A DNA stretch of 62,986 bases, counting the filler, from Reticulomyxa filosa (Eukaryota > Protista > Foraminifera), in the NCBI GenBank assembly GCA_000512085.1. It is 17 parts of 17 records of this genome, joined end to end, with 100 filler letters (N's around TTAATTAATTAA, not from the genome) between each part and the next. Parts side by side here need not be neighbours in the genome. Positions count along the whole stretch, not along the records: positions 33,501 to 39,737 come from ASPP01005554.1; 16 more parts are not named here. One strand, 5' to 3'. Each line of letters opens with the position of its first letter. Position 1 is the first letter of the stretch. Made by a program: the position numbers and the translations under genes. Under the pieces are notes generated by a model, which had not been told where the DNA came from, ran no database searches, and saw only the letters and a list, made by a program, of their open reading frames with translations. This document shows, one piece after another, positions 33,501-39,837 of the stretch.

Positions 33501-34405
33501 GAGGAGGAGGAGGAGGAGGAGGAGGAGGAAGACGAAGAAAAAGGGTTGTCGTTGTTCTTCGTGTCTCCCCAACCACTTCCCCAAATGTTGCCATTCGAAC
33601 TGTCACTCTTATTGGAATCATTTTTGCCTTTGTTTCCCCATCCCCAATCTGCTGTTTGTCGCAATACATTTCGTTTTTGACAAAACATAGATTCATTTCA
33701 CACGAGAAAACGGATCACACATACACACACACACACCGGCGGTGGTTCCCCATCCATTATTGCTGCTACCACTACTGCTATCCGTGCCACTCCATGAACT
33801 GCTATTCCCCCATCCGTCATTCGACGGATTAGAACTGCCACTACTGCTGCTCCATGTGCCATTGCCGCTGCCATTGCCGTCGCTGGCATTCGGATTGATG
33901 GGCGACACTCCAAACATGTCTTCAAATCGCAACTGTTCTGGTGATTTGCTCGCAAATTGTTTCTGCGCACAAATGTTTTGGTAGTAATAACGCACTTTGT
34001 CCTGCGTCGTGCACTCGGCCTTAAATGTTATATGTTTTGTACCCAATTTACCTTTCGCTGAAGATGAGTTCCAAGCGTCATTTGGATTATTGCTGCTAGT
34101 CTTGTTACTGTCATTGCTGCCGTTGCCACTCCCCCAATTGCTTCCACCTTTTCACCGTCATCAAATACACACTACTCTTTATATCCCTTTTCTACAAATG
34201 TGCACCATTTTTTTTGGCTCATGCTTTACCATTGTTCCCCCAACTATTCCCATTGCTTGAACTCCAATCATTACCGCTGCTCGAGCCCCAACCTTTTTTG
34301 TTAAAATGCAAGTCACAAACATCGAGCACTTTCAACTTCAAAACAAACCATACCTGAAGTATTGCTACCTGAAGTATTGCTACCCCAATTATTGCTCCAC
34401 GACAT
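33501..34405 (-). CDS. WG/GW-repeat protein with a Nup98-type GLEBS motif, 5' part; exons 34405-34354, 34292-34230, 34147-33737, about 33648-33501
   Basis: Three phase-1 GT-AG introns give one frame: MSWSNNWGSNTSGSNTSGWGSSSGNDWSSSNGNSWGNNGGSNWGSG...GTKHITFKAECTTQDKVRYYYQNICAQKQFASKSPEQLRFEDM...DGWGN...NGWGTTADWGWG...IWGSGWG. Confidence 0.75.
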
Positions 34406-35247
34406 TATTATTAATTCACAACTAAAAAAAAAGCTTGAGGCACTTCAAAAAACTAACAACAAAATAGTCACAATTTATTTCATTGGCAACAAAATCAGAA
34501 ACAAAATGGATCATATTAAATTATGCTTTTATTGCGTTGAAAAAGAAATAATAGAATGTAAAAAAAAAATATTAACACCTCGATCAAAAAAGATTACATC
34601 TGATAATCAGCTGTTGCGAATGGTCGTCGTTTTCATGAAATTAAAGGATTAACTATCAATTAAATGTTTAAGAAGATTTTGAATATGTTGTATTTTCTAA
34701 AAATCATTTAAAAAACCACTAAAAGTATAAAATTTTGAAAAAAAAGTAGTTTACGTTCATAGAGTTTTACCTCGGCATGCAGCTTGCTCGACAGTGTCTA
34801 TAGCAAAGTAAATTACAAAAATTTTTTTTGGTGGTGTTCTTCTTTTGTTTTAGGTCATGTTATGTTATTTTAAAAAATTAAGACAAATGTCAAAATTGTC
34901 AACGGCGCAAAACTTAAGCACATGATCAGCAAAGCACTTCCAACACTTTGAAAACGTACTAATTTTTTTTGGGCGTAAGAAATAACAAACTACTTCCAAA
35001 AAAATGTTTTGATGTCTTTTTCGTTTATTTTTATTTTGCTTCGATATAAGATAATTGCCTTTTTACTCAAGAAACAAGCAACTTTGTTCTATACAATTCA
35101 GAATTACTGACTACAAAAGTCAAATAGTGCAAACGTCAATGATACTTGAAAAAAGATTTTCATGATTTTGCGCTCTTCTTTCATTCTTTTTTTGTTATTC
35201 GTGTTGCACTTTGATACTTTAAACATTATCAATGACTATATTAAAAC

Positions 35248-37725
35248 ATGAAATGTTGTATTCGCTTTTTCATAAATAGTTTGATTTTATTTTCGTTTCA
35301 TGCAAATATACTTGGCTTCACTTGTACTAAAAAAACAAATTTTCCACTTTCCTTCGATCATGTCTGTATATTCTTTCCCTTTGCCGGAACAGATACATGT
35401 TACATTTGGTTCTCAGCCTCATTCTTTAGTGATTTCTTGGATAACAGTCTTCCAAGACCATAGTGAAATGATGCTTCACGAACTGAACGTGATATCAATT
35501 GTTCGATACGGATATTCTTCAACACATTTGCCATATATAATATCAAGTACAGATCCACCAAAACTCTTTGACGAACTAGTTTCAATTTCAAGACTTTCGC
35601 ATAGTGTGGAAATTCGTCATCTCAGGCCAAGTAGGCATCAATATTAGTTACAGGGGAAAAATTGCGACAACTTATAGTTTGAAAGAGTTTCAAACAAAAG
35701 TTGAAAAGACAGGAGATTTTTTGATCCTCATTAATGACGCTTTTTTTTTTTTTTGTCAATGTGTGATAGAAAAATAGAAAATGACATATATGTATGTATA
35801 ACAAAAACAAAGACACACAACTGTATTATCAATGTGGCCATGCAATTAGCAGTGGAGAGAGTGACACCCCAGTGGAAATCTTCCATCCAGCTGTGTACGT
35901 GGCCAACATCCCACGCCTTTCGCATTTCTTTGCAAATGCATCGCCGAGACAAACGGGAGAGAGAACGAAGCAGCCTCCCTATGCCCAAGGCAGAGTGTCT
36001 CCGACATCGCAACCAGCCCCGATTGAATGGGTGCACTTTGGAGACTTTTCGACGAATACAACAAATGCTAAAGTGTACGCTGGGGATTGCCTGCAGGCAC
36101 TGAAGAACATAGTATTAAAGCACTCTCGTCATCAACGTCCGATTAATTTTGTCATCCACAATGGAGACATTGCATACAATTTGAACTGGGAAAATGGATG
36201 CGTGGGAGATCGCTTTCTACGCGATATTGAGCCGATTGCTTCGTACGTACCTTATCTGACGATTCCTGGGGATCATGAGATCGTCAACAAAAGGATGTAT
36301 CACCAACGTGCCAGCTACTCGCATTACCTGCATCGCTTCAATGGAGTATCGTATTTAAGTCGAGCCAGTTCGTCTACTAACCCGTTGTGGTACAGGTTCA
36401 TTTTTTTTTTTAAATAGACCGGTCTCCTTTTTTTTTTTTTTGCGCAACGTTTTCTCTAATGAATGTTTGCATCTGTGATTTTTGCGATACCGGGCATGGA
36501 GTGGGGGCAATTTATGTTGTTTTGAATAGCTTTAATTATGGAAATATCCACTTTATTATGTTGCATTCGGATCCATTTTTATTTGCCATGGTTGGGAGCT
36601 ATCAAATGGAAAGCGACTTGACGGAGGAATGGGATTGGCTGATTCGAGACCTGCGTGATGTCGATCGAAGTATCACTCCCTGGGTTATTGTCTATGGACA
36701 TCGGCCATTCTATTGTAGCTCCAATCCGATGAAGCCGTCTATTTTGGGTCAGTTTTAACAGAGATGTTTTTTTTTAAAAACAAATTTTTTTTTGGTTGAT
36801 ATTTTTTGGTTGATATTTTTTGGAATCAGGGGGCATTATTTACGATTGGGGTTGCATTGTCGAGGTAGAAGGACTTCGTGGACTGCGACATGGACGCAAT
36901 CTAGAACAGCTGTTGCACGATTTTGGTGTTGGTGGGTTAAGACATGCAACCAATCTGTCACTTATACTCACTCATGTCTCATTGTATGCATGTACGTGTG
37001 TGTGCAGACTTGTACATTGCTGGGCATGTCCATGCGTATGAACGCACCTGGCCAGTATATCGGAACACAGTGACACAGCGCAATTACGACAATCCACTTT
37101 CCACAGTCCATGTGACCAATGGTAACGCCGGAACAATGAACAACGCCGATACATTGTCATGGTTGAAACCACACTTCACGGCACACAGAATTGACGGATC
37201 CGATCAAACCTCAGTCCATTTTGCACATTTAATTGTTCACAATGATACAAGGCTAACATACAATGTTTGGGACAAACATAACCGACTACTAGATACATTT
37301 GATATTTACCAAAGTGCTCATGGACCATTCACCAATCATCCACTTTATGTGGAACAACGTCTGTGGATCCCTTTTTGGATGAGGTCCAATTTAGCTATTT
37401 TGGTGGCCTCGTTTTTATCATTGCTTGCATTATTTTGCTTTTATTCTATGCTTTGTGTCGAATTAAATTTTGTAAATTGCGCCTCAGAAAATGGATCAAA
37501 AAATATAGATATCATTACATACATCCGGACATTCTATCAGTTCACAATTGTCACGATCAATATCGATCTTTCCCATCTACATGGAATAAATTGCAAATCG
37601 AATGGTCATTATCTTTTTTGAAGTCCTATCGAAAAAGACAGTATCATAATTACGATATGAACTTGCGACTGGTAAAGAAAATTCCCATCGAAAAACAGTT
37701 CAAGGAAAATATCGACTTAGTTTGA
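35248..37725 (+). CDS. Purple acid phosphatase (ACP7-like) with FN3 N-terminal domain and C-terminal TM anchor, multi-exon
   Basis: PEQIHVTFG...VISWIT...VRYG (PAP N-domain), HFGDFS, IHNGDIAY, IPGDHE, WY|SFNYGNIHFIML, TPWVIVYGHRPFYCS, AGHVHAYERTWPVY, VHVTNGNAG. Confidence 0.88.
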
Positions 37726-38167
37726 GTTTTTGTATTTTTGAATTTTTTTCTTGATTCCAAAGGAAGAGCTTTCTTGTTTTTACACTTGTCCTTTCTAATT
37801 TTTTCGTTGTCTTCAATAAAATGCATCTCAAATAAAAAAATTCAAATAAAAACAGATCTTTTATTTCTCTTTAAGGAATGAAATTACTGTTGCACAATTT
37901 GCATTTTAGTTAAAGTATTGCGTTTTGATGTTATGGTTTCTAACTTCAAATTGCAAGTAGCAAAAAAAAAGGTAACATCTGAGTTTTTGTATAGACATGA
38001 TGTTTTAGTACACATGACAAATCTTCATTTTCACGACTATTTTATACTTATATATTCTGCGCTTTAAATTCGTTTTGGTGCAAACGTTACAATGTCTCGT
38101 CGTCGATTCCTTTTTTGTCAGTCAACGCTTCATCTACAGAATACTTCAAAAATGACAAAAAGTATAT

Positions 38168-38435
38168 GAAATAAGAGATCTGAAAGACAACATTGTAGAA
38201 AACTGTACTGCTGGCCCTGTACGGGAGGATTTGTTTGTATGGCAGGCTCTCATGTGTGGACCAGTTGAAAAATGTTTTCAAAAACAACTTTTTAAACAAT
38301 TTACTTGTTTTAATTTTTTGTTTATCAGCACGGAACACAATATGAAGGTGGAGTGTTTATCTTGGACATAATATTTCCGGCTGACTATAATTTCAAATCA
38401 TTTTGTATAAATTTTCGAACAAAGATTTACCAGCA
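38168..38435 (+). pseudogene. Ubiquitin-conjugating enzyme E2 (UBE2D/E-like) remnant with one intron; HPN motif and catalytic Cys absent
   Basis: EIRDLKDNIVENCTAGPVREDLFVWQALMCGP|HGTQYEGGVFILDIIFPADYNFKSFCINFRTKIYQ, then the similarity ends. Confidence 0.75.
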
Positions 38436-38839
38436 TAAATGTTTTTCATTACGTTCATCACGAACTCTTTTGAAAAGACTCGTTTACTACAACTGTTTCA
38501 TTGGAACAATTATTTGGAAAAGATCAATTAAAACAATATTGACTAATAACTTTTCTATGCTGGCTAAAAACATTGTTTTTCAAAGTTTCGCAGGCATGCA
38601 TATTAACTATATATTACCAAGATGAAATTTCTAAATCTTTCTTTTAGAAGAAAATTTTGAAATTCAAGTAAAGTATTACAAACGTTTTTTCGTCCAGAAA
38701 TCGATGCTAAGGAAGAAAGTTTTTATAGGGGCTGAATTTTGATATAACAAGTTTGGTCCAAGATTCAACTGCTATATCCAGAGAATATGTGCCTTTAAAT
38801 TAATATGATTAATAGATTAAACCAAATTATCAATATTTA

Positions 38840-39340
38840 TTTTTAACTTCAATCTAAATTGTTACCATTTGCTACTTATCAGATTACAAGTCTAAATCTT
38901 TTGTCGTTCAATTCGTGGTAAGACCACGTTGTTTTGATATTAAACGTGATTGGGAGATGATCTGAGTGCAAATCCAATTCAACGTCATCTGTTCTACAAT
39001 TACTAACTAATGGAGGAGTAGACGACGAACATAATATGATATCAACGCTTGATGTCGCATTGTCATTATAAATGTATTTACAAATGTAATCCATTGGATA
39101 AAATGAAATCGAGAATACAATCTCTTACATAGTCAGTATTTTGATCCAAATATGCAGGATGATGTGAATTCCAATATACTAAAATTATTATGTGTTAAAT
39201 TATTTTCCGGTCATATTGCAATTCTTGCTCGAATGCTTGGATGTTAAAATGATCACAATGCAACATTCGATAGAAACTGCAAAATAATAGTTTCTTTTGA
39301 TCGGAACATGAGATTTTCACTCAACAAGATTCATAACTAA
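38840..39340 (-). mobile_element. Degenerate non-LTR retrotransposon (LINE-type) APE endonuclease fragment
   Basis: Frameshifted pieces LFCSFYR..., WNSHHPAYLDQNTD...ILDFILSNGLHL (the GDFNAHHPxW...LLN region) and SSVDIILCS...LHSDHLPITFNI (the IDL...SDHxPI motif). Confidence 0.75.
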
Positions 39341-39837
39341 ATACATTGAACGTATCATGCATATTATTGAATGAACGGAATGTCAATGTAAATATATTCG
39401 ACATAAAACTTCAGATCTTACTGTTTCAATCAACCTTGTTGCACACAATGACTTACCAACAGTCAGAGGGCAAAAATCAGTGCAAATCGAGGATGAAGCA
39501 ATAGAGTAGTCCAAACAATCAACAACAAGTGAAAAAAAAAATTTTAAGTTTTAATTTATCTTTAAAATATCAAAAAAAAAACAAATAAAATCTCAAAGGT
39601 TGTACGGCGAGATCAATCAACAGTTGCGAAAACAGATTTGGCTCCCTGTGGAATGGTCAGGGGGGAATTACAGGAGCAATGCCAATGCTCAACCGAATCC
39701 TCTGAGCATTGTTTTCGAAGTGTTGAAGTCTCAGTGANNNNNNNNNNNNNNNNNNNNNNNNNNNNNNNNNNNNNNNNNNNNTTAATTAATTAANNNNNNN
39801 NNNNNNNNNNNNNNNNNNNNNNNNNNNNNNNNNNNNN

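Follow-up and report, generated by a model that had tools for sequence, protein, structure and literature searches.

The window analysed here is a stretch of 62,986 nucleotides joined from 17 parts of the genome of Reticulomyxa filosa (GCA_000512085.1), and all positions are counted along it. Positions 33501 to 39737 are the complete 6,237-nt contig ASPP01005554.1, at one end of which the minus strand carries the 5' part of the gene RFI_06809. The gene model was read by hand from the minus-strand DNA, and the searches were run exon by exon. Four exons and three introns yield a spliced product of which approximately 225 N-terminal residues (222 whole codons) are visible. The gene is composed as follows:

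34354-34405, minus strand: exon 1, with the ATG at 34405, 17 codons and one base, two Trp and a 15-nt unit occurring three times
34293-34353, minus strand: intron 1, 61 nt, GTATGG..AAAAAG, phase 1
34230-34292, minus strand: exon 2, 63 nt; its three Trp stand in S/N/G surroundings
34148-34229, minus strand: intron 2, 82 nt, GTAAAG..GAAAAG, phase 1
33737-34147, minus strand: exon 3, 411 nt, with the GLEBS between two Trp/S/N/G flanks
33909-34046, minus strand: Nup98-type GLEBS (LGTKH..YYYQNIC..KSPEQLRFEDMFG), by PF21240, profile and hhalign
33652-33736, minus strand: intron 3, 85 nt, phase 1, with the donor within a (GT)n run and the acceptor CAGCAG
33501-33651, minus strand: exon 4 (partial), with four Trp in WG/GWG and one NPF; the exon leaves the contig
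33501-33538, minus strand: 12 successive Ser codons, mostly TCC, in which the contig stops

As the contig ends inside the Ser run of exon 4, the C-terminus of RFI_06809 is missing. All three introns are of the GT..AG type and, as the earlier note on this DNA had it, in phase 1; none of their lengths is divisible by three, and reading through leads to a stop codon in each of them. The unusual composition of the product continues from exon to exon solely in the spliced frames. The further suggestion of that note, that the common phase would permit a shuffling of repeat exons, had to be abandoned because no DNA repeat of exon scale is present: the only tandem repeat is the 15-nt unit in exon 1, and between the exons there are only matches of 14 to 28 nt. 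Intron 3 has another in-frame acceptor (NAGNAG, 33649-33654), 3 nt further downstream than the first, and isoforms differing by one residue are possible. Independently of this, a second donor GT is present in the 15-nt repeat of exon 1 (34351-34395, minus strand), 15 nt on the 5' side of the used site; it would yield an in-frame isoform differing by five residues.

The GenBank model of RFI_06809 (ETO30310.1; 193 aa; 34322-33693, minus strand) is mis-spliced. It begins within intron 1, passes through exon 2 out of frame, enters exon 3 by a non-canonical junction and stops within intron 3, and in this way misses exons 1, 2 and 4. The hand-spliced product is therefore absent from the databases. 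A search for homologous proteins with the GenBank model (P0001) returned only this model itself, and a protein-atlas search with exon 3 gave no usable match.

Further features lie elsewhere on the contig. A divergently oriented neighbour (approximately 35360-37620, plus strand) is a multi-exon purple acid phosphatase with the domains Pur_ac_phosph_N, Metallophos and Metallophos_C and a hydrophobic C-terminal stretch, annotated with 512 aa. Two exon-like pieces at approximately 38229-38451 (plus strand), missing from the database gene list, belong to a ubiquitin-conjugating E2 (UQ_con, E 9e-6 for 38329-38451); after TKIY their sequence differs from the usual HPN motif, and they may therefore represent a degenerate or UEV-like copy. 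Finally, an open reading frame at 38879-39094 (minus strand) gave no Pfam match; its motif ..SDHLPI.. recalls the C-terminal endonuclease/exonuclease/phosphatase motif of non-LTR retroelements.

The 222 codons of the RFI_06809 product comprise 15 Trp, 60 Ser, 35 Asn and 31 Gly, with 10 WG and 4 GW pairs and a single FG right after the GLEBS, so that the earlier description of roughly 220 S/N/G-rich residues with about 15 Trp, ten of them in WG, and one FG holds. If the GLEBS is excluded from the calculation, the remaining 176 residues contain 15 Trp, 11 Asp, 7 Lys and one Phe, and no Leu, Tyr, Glu or Arg at all. Trp occurs once per 11.7 residues in these flanks (8.5%) and is their only frequent hydrophobic residue. 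The probability of at least 15 Trp at a background of 1.2% is 5e-9, and that of Gly following 10 of the 15 Trp is 2e-5. On both sides of the GLEBS the flanks are of S/N/G-rich low complexity, and the N-terminal part encoded by RFI_06809 is intrinsically disordered.

Compared to known repeat domains, the flanks do not show the FG/GLFG repeats of Nup98 and Nup116, as GLFG is absent, the one FG abuts the GLEBS, and Phe is found once among the 176 residues. Their content of Trp, Asp and Lys also departs from the charge-depleted spacers, in which Trp, Tyr and acidic residues are selected against, expected of Nup98 by the rule given in PMC9918544. What they do present is a series of WG and GW motifs in G/S/N/D-rich disorder, as in GW182-like proteins.

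The segment in the middle of exon 3 extends from LGTKH to FEDMFG (34046-33909), and the assignment of a GLEBS to 34043-33915, made previously by eye, is upheld by three lines of comparison. The sole Pfam match of exon 3 with E up to 10 is PF21240 (Nup98_GLEBS). This profile, the use of which had been proposed as a check, is matched with 16.3-18.4 bits (E 0.011-0.0023), below the Pfam cutoff of 27. Sequence matches of exon 3 to the PDB are four only (3mmy_B, 7byf_B, 4owr_B and 7vpg_B, E approximately 0.9), and all four are Nup98 GLEBS peptides crystallised with Rae1. A profile built from the first relatives (A1) matches Nup98 chains in the PDB at 7e-5 to 2e-4, while chains of Bub1, BubR1 or Mad3 are found at E up to 10 neither by the single sequence nor by the profile. 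In the first alignment PF21240 was matched by six of seven segments. The final alignment of 11 members (A3), compared by hhalign to ten GLEBS of canonical FG-Nup98 (A4), gives 98.65% and E 4.6e-16, with homology over approximately 50 residues. The sub-cutoff score of 16-18 bits is normal for real motifs, since the GLEBS of a bona fide Nup98, a metagenomic FG-Nup98 of 902 aa with PF04096 (L005), itself scores just 19.9 bits on PF21240. On these sequence comparisons we regard the R. filosa motif as a genuine Nup98-type GLEBS at the family level.

Within the motif the acidic core E-x-L-R-F-E-D is kept. In human Nup98 the tandem glutamates E201/E202 form salt bridges to Rae1 (PMC3783196). This pair reads E-Q in R. 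filosa (KSPEQLRFED), the second Glu being replaced by Gln. The second Glu is present in all ten other members of the clade described below (as E-E, and as D-E in P0005); in oomycete Nup98 fragments the second GLEBS likewise reads E-Q. The conserved Met and the two Tyr of the canonical motif (SI-x-AM..Y....EDY) correspond to Q, F and M in R. filosa.

Relatives were collected with phmmer, run exhaustively against 1.84 billion representatives and giving seven matches, and by a word-index search; together they led to the alignment A3, in which the motif is common to R. filosa and ten relatives over its entire length. No further GLEBS protein of R. filosa was found in the exhaustive search of the 1.84 billion representatives, and a scan of viral contigs with the motif profile detected no relative. 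One match (P0002) was set aside as a repetitive, artefact-like sequence.

The GLEBS sequences fall into two groups. The canonical group (P0003, P0008, P0010, P0015, P0016, P0018-P0022, P0024, L004 and L005) has FG repeats around the motif in most members, and its aligned subset A4 follows the pattern SI-x-AM..Y..KS-EELRFEDY; L004 and L005 are canonical Nup98 N-termini with Met, repeats, GLEBS and repeats. As an observation on this group, Globisporangium ultimum and G. splendens (P0003, P0008, P0010) have Nup98-like N-terminal fragments with two GLEBS copies approximately 120 residues apart. The non-canonical group, which includes R. filosa, follows (F/Y)Y-Q-(N/H)-IC..F..KS-E-LRFED-x-(F/Y)G and contains FG repeats in none of its members. 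Proteins of this kind, for which we use the designation non-FG 'YYQxIC' GLEBS-tagged proteins, represent a grouping made in this analysis; the R. filosa product belongs to it with the motif GTK..F..(F/Y)YxQ(N/H)IC..F..KS.E.LRFED.(F/Y)G and with flanks devoid of FG repeats. A maximum-likelihood tree, calculated from approximately 60 columns, unites the 11 GLEBS motifs of non-FG proteins in one clade, the support of which (92/87) is moderate. The sister of this clade is the true FG-Nup98 L005, to whose GLEBS that of R. filosa is 41% identical.

A close counterpart is P0009, an uncharacterised transcript of Bolivina argentea (EP01084_P004223 of EukProt, 328 aa) and the only foraminiferal homologue found. 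It is 38% identical to RFI_06809 over 68 residues, and orthology of the two is not proven. Like the R. filosa product it comes from a foraminifer, begins with MSW, has Trp in N/S-rich stretches on both sides of the GLEBS and shares the GLEBS subtype YxQxIC..KSPE-LRFED-F. It differs from the R. filosa product in possessing four Trp only, a far shorter linker and a visible C-terminal part, a beta-rich domain of approximately 190 aa. By ESM-Atlas features this domain is labelled MATH (0.93, 179 shared features, 24 of 30 matches). A Pfam search of P0009 left the C-terminal domain unrecognised and gave no match to PF04096. The AlphaFold model, made without an alignment, has a pLDDT of 42; Foldseek found no match to it, and VIA-align returned generic beta-sandwich matches with Z of 5-6, the MATH domains of TRAF6, SPOP, TRAF3 and USP7 being among them and not above noise. 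Because of the poor model, the lack of a Foldseek match and the VIA-align scores at noise level, the MATH label stays a lead from a language model, and the C-terminal domain of P0009 is possibly MATH-like.

Other carriers of the motif are built in different ways. P0006 is a Tara Oceans metatranscript fragment with WS/WG motifs in N-rich flanks. A contig from ENA (L006:284-1362, plus strand, sample chicken_3) encodes a beta-rich N-terminal part, a SAM domain and then a GLEBS of the same subtype as in R. filosa; a frameshift, or else a tiny intron, divides this GLEBS between two frames. No similarity was detected between this beta-rich part and the C-terminal domain of P0009. P0005, from a Tara Oceans metagenome scaffold (L001:1210-3663, plus strand), is 817 aa long and without Pfam domains, and the GLEBS constitutes its last 55 residues; its upstream neighbour is an open reading frame with a weak F-box match. 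When the GLEBS-bearing C-terminus of P0005 was used as a query for proteins of Nup98 length, a single candidate resulted. As its carriers differ in architecture, the GLEBS may act as a portable docking module in the non-FG clade.

A special case is P0004 (232 aa; L002:3870-4568, plus strand, Logan contig ERR12725707_29827), the GLEBS-like motif of which is 47% identical to that of R. filosa. Inspection of its sequence by eye shows a Sec-type signal peptide and, at the C-terminus, a membrane helix. The genes around it (NifS-like, HtrA-like, PheS and NDK; 37% GC) form a bacterial row, in which the PheS is of the bacterial type (304 bits, cutoff 237). With P0004 a bacterium, perhaps one living as a symbiont or parasite of protists, may mimic the motif that docks Rae1 in its host. 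A GLEBS mimic is not described in the literature we searched.

Taken at face value, the layout at the N-terminus is that of human Nup98 and yeast Nup116 (GLFG repeats with an embedded GLEBS; PF21240, PDB 3MMY), and the earlier description of repeats, GLEBS and repeats with Trp in place of Phe is accurate. This raises the question of whether RFI_06809 is the Nup98/Nup116 orthologue of R. filosa, or a lineage-specific paralogue, in which WG replaces FG/GLFG as the cohesive, receptor-binding unit and the autoproteolytic domain lies on another contig. The order of Met, repeats, GLEBS and repeats is as in L004 and L005, the GLEBS is homologous to that of Nup98, and the spacers are polar (S/N/G/T) with hardly any other hydrophobic residue. 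Aromatic motifs are about as dense, with Trp once in 11.7 residues, as in Nup98 FG domains, where one FG per 12 residues is conserved (PMC9918544), and the exhaustive search yielded no second GLEBS protein of R. filosa. Against this stands the strong selection on the FG domains of Nup98, in every eukaryotic clade, to avoid both Trp and negative charge; phase separation is lost when a moderate negative charge is present, and even repeats with Phe changed to Tyr exclude native transport receptors (PMC9918544). In the 176 flank residues of R. filosa, by comparison, Trp makes up 8.5% and Asp 6% (11 residues), besides 4% Lys. The flanks also differ from Nup98/Nup116 in having Trp for Phe, no Leu and no GLFG, and the GLEBS differs in the Gln at the second salt-bridge position. 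Moreover, the GLEBS clusters with non-FG proteins in the tree, and the foraminiferal homologue of 328 aa is without a match to PF04096. The autoproteolytic domain is not within the visible part of RFI_06809, which stops at the contig end before the C-terminus is reached. A precedent for a lineage-specific change of the repeat motif is given by the nucleus-specific Nup98 paralogues of ciliates, with GLFG versus NIFN repeats; those repeats, unlike the R. filosa flanks, retain Phe, and in those paralogues the Nup98 C-terminal domain is retained as well. The idea of a tryptophan-based nucleoporin put forward in the earlier note thus survives in part: the GLEBS, the layout and the motif density speak for it, the content of Trp and Asp and the grouping with non-FG proteins against it. 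We consider a Nup98 identity of RFI_06809 rather unlikely. Slightly less probable still is the broader proposition that WG repeats, instead of FG repeats, make up the cohesive Nup98 domain in Reticulomyxa and perhaps throughout the foraminifera. A natural permeability-barrier nucleoporin based on Trp, if true, would imply co-adapted transport receptors. A link between Reticulomyxa and Nup98 was not found in the literature searched.

WG and GW motifs in G/S/N/D-rich disorder are also the compositional signature of Argonaute hooks, as in GW182, NRPE1, Tas3 and Wag1. RFI_06809 could accordingly be a GW182-like scaffold in which the WG/GW motifs bind the Trp pockets of PIWI domains of Argonaute or Piwi proteins and the GLEBS couples the complex to Rae1 and mRNA export. 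The 10 WG and 4 GW lie in just such disorder (G/S/N/D/T-rich), similar to the hook regions of GW182/TNRC6, and Asp beside Trp is tolerated in hooks and not in FG domains. The signature is compositional only, however, and exons 3 and 4 gave no match to Ago_hook or any other GW182-family domain of Pfam at E up to 10; GW182 proteins for their part are without a GLEBS. The GLEBS literature we searched, which was not targeted at Argonaute, yields no GLEBS-Argonaute link, and we know of none. We consider the hook function improbable. Still lower is our estimate for a divergent kinetochore or checkpoint adaptor, the motif of which would dock the Rae1 paralogue Bub3 as in Bub1 and BubR1/Mad3. According to PMC2172680, Rae1 and Bub3 are homologous propellers that both bind GLEBS-type motifs, and the acidic core of the motif is retained in R. 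filosa; yet the specific PDB matches are all Nup98. The lowest credence we give to a non-functional low-complexity region or decaying gene fragment, the GLEBS-like part of which would serve no purpose today. In favour of it are the shortness of the contig, the cut-off gene, the lack of expression evidence and the change of a key Glu to Gln. On the other hand, one frame runs across four exons with three canonical introns and a uniform composition, the motif is conserved over its full length in the ten relatives, and one of the relatives with Trp-containing flanks (P0006) is derived from a transcript.

At about even chances we favour the reading that the disordered, Trp-rich product of RFI_06809 is the N-terminus of a GLEBS-tagged protein docking Rae1, the C-terminal effector part of which is possibly MATH-like as in Bolivina. 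Judged from the motif, docking of Rae1 by the product is probable. The GLEBS would lie as a hairpin, in the usual manner, on the WD40 propeller of Rae1/Gle2 at its top face, with the C-terminal arm KSPEQLRFED doing most of the binding work. The protein would belong to an undescribed set of protist proteins which are GLEBS-tagged and lack FG repeats; for these the motif would be a portable module for docking instead of a piece of a nucleoporin of the pore barrier. Points that weigh against this reading are the Gln in the salt-bridge pair, the moderate support of the non-FG clade with a true FG-Nup98 as its sister, the tentative nature of the MATH label, the unproven orthology with P0009, and the missing C-terminus, which may yet hold a Nup98 peptidase domain.

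A hint towards the role of the flanks arises from studies of FG phases. Trp ranks with the residues that FG phases attract most strongly, and extra Trp or Tyr on the surface of GFP greatly increase its partitioning into the FG phase and render the protein promiscuous (PMC12700808). By analogy, a disordered chain studded with Trp should be taken up by FG phases as one of their clients. Such behaviour fits a Rae1-docking adaptor equally well as a barrier-forming nucleoporin. In the adaptor, the exposed Trp residues could serve as multivalent aromatic 'stickers', and, as Trp is so strongly attracted by FG, the simplest mechanism would be that the flanks move into FG phases, or into other condensates rich in aromatic residues, and take Rae1 along, or that Rae1 takes them along. 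The effector function would reside in the C-terminal part beyond the contig, the Bolivina counterpart of which may be a MATH-like beta-sandwich; a GLEBS-MATH link is not reported in the literature searched.

From the literature searched and general knowledge, the GLEBS has been described in two settings only, namely Nup98/Nup116 with Rae1/Gle2 and Bub1/BubR1 with Bub3. The R. filosa locus and its relatives indicate a third setting, in which a Nup98-type GLEBS is located on non-FG protist proteins, among them Trp-rich disordered, possibly MATH-like and SAM-domain proteins and one encoded in a bacterial gene row. If a Trp-based Nup98 were true after all, it would contradict the universal selection against Trp reported for Nup98 FG domains. 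The locus provides a natural sequence for probing exposed Trp repeats against FG phases, and the set of candidate Rae1 clients is widened.
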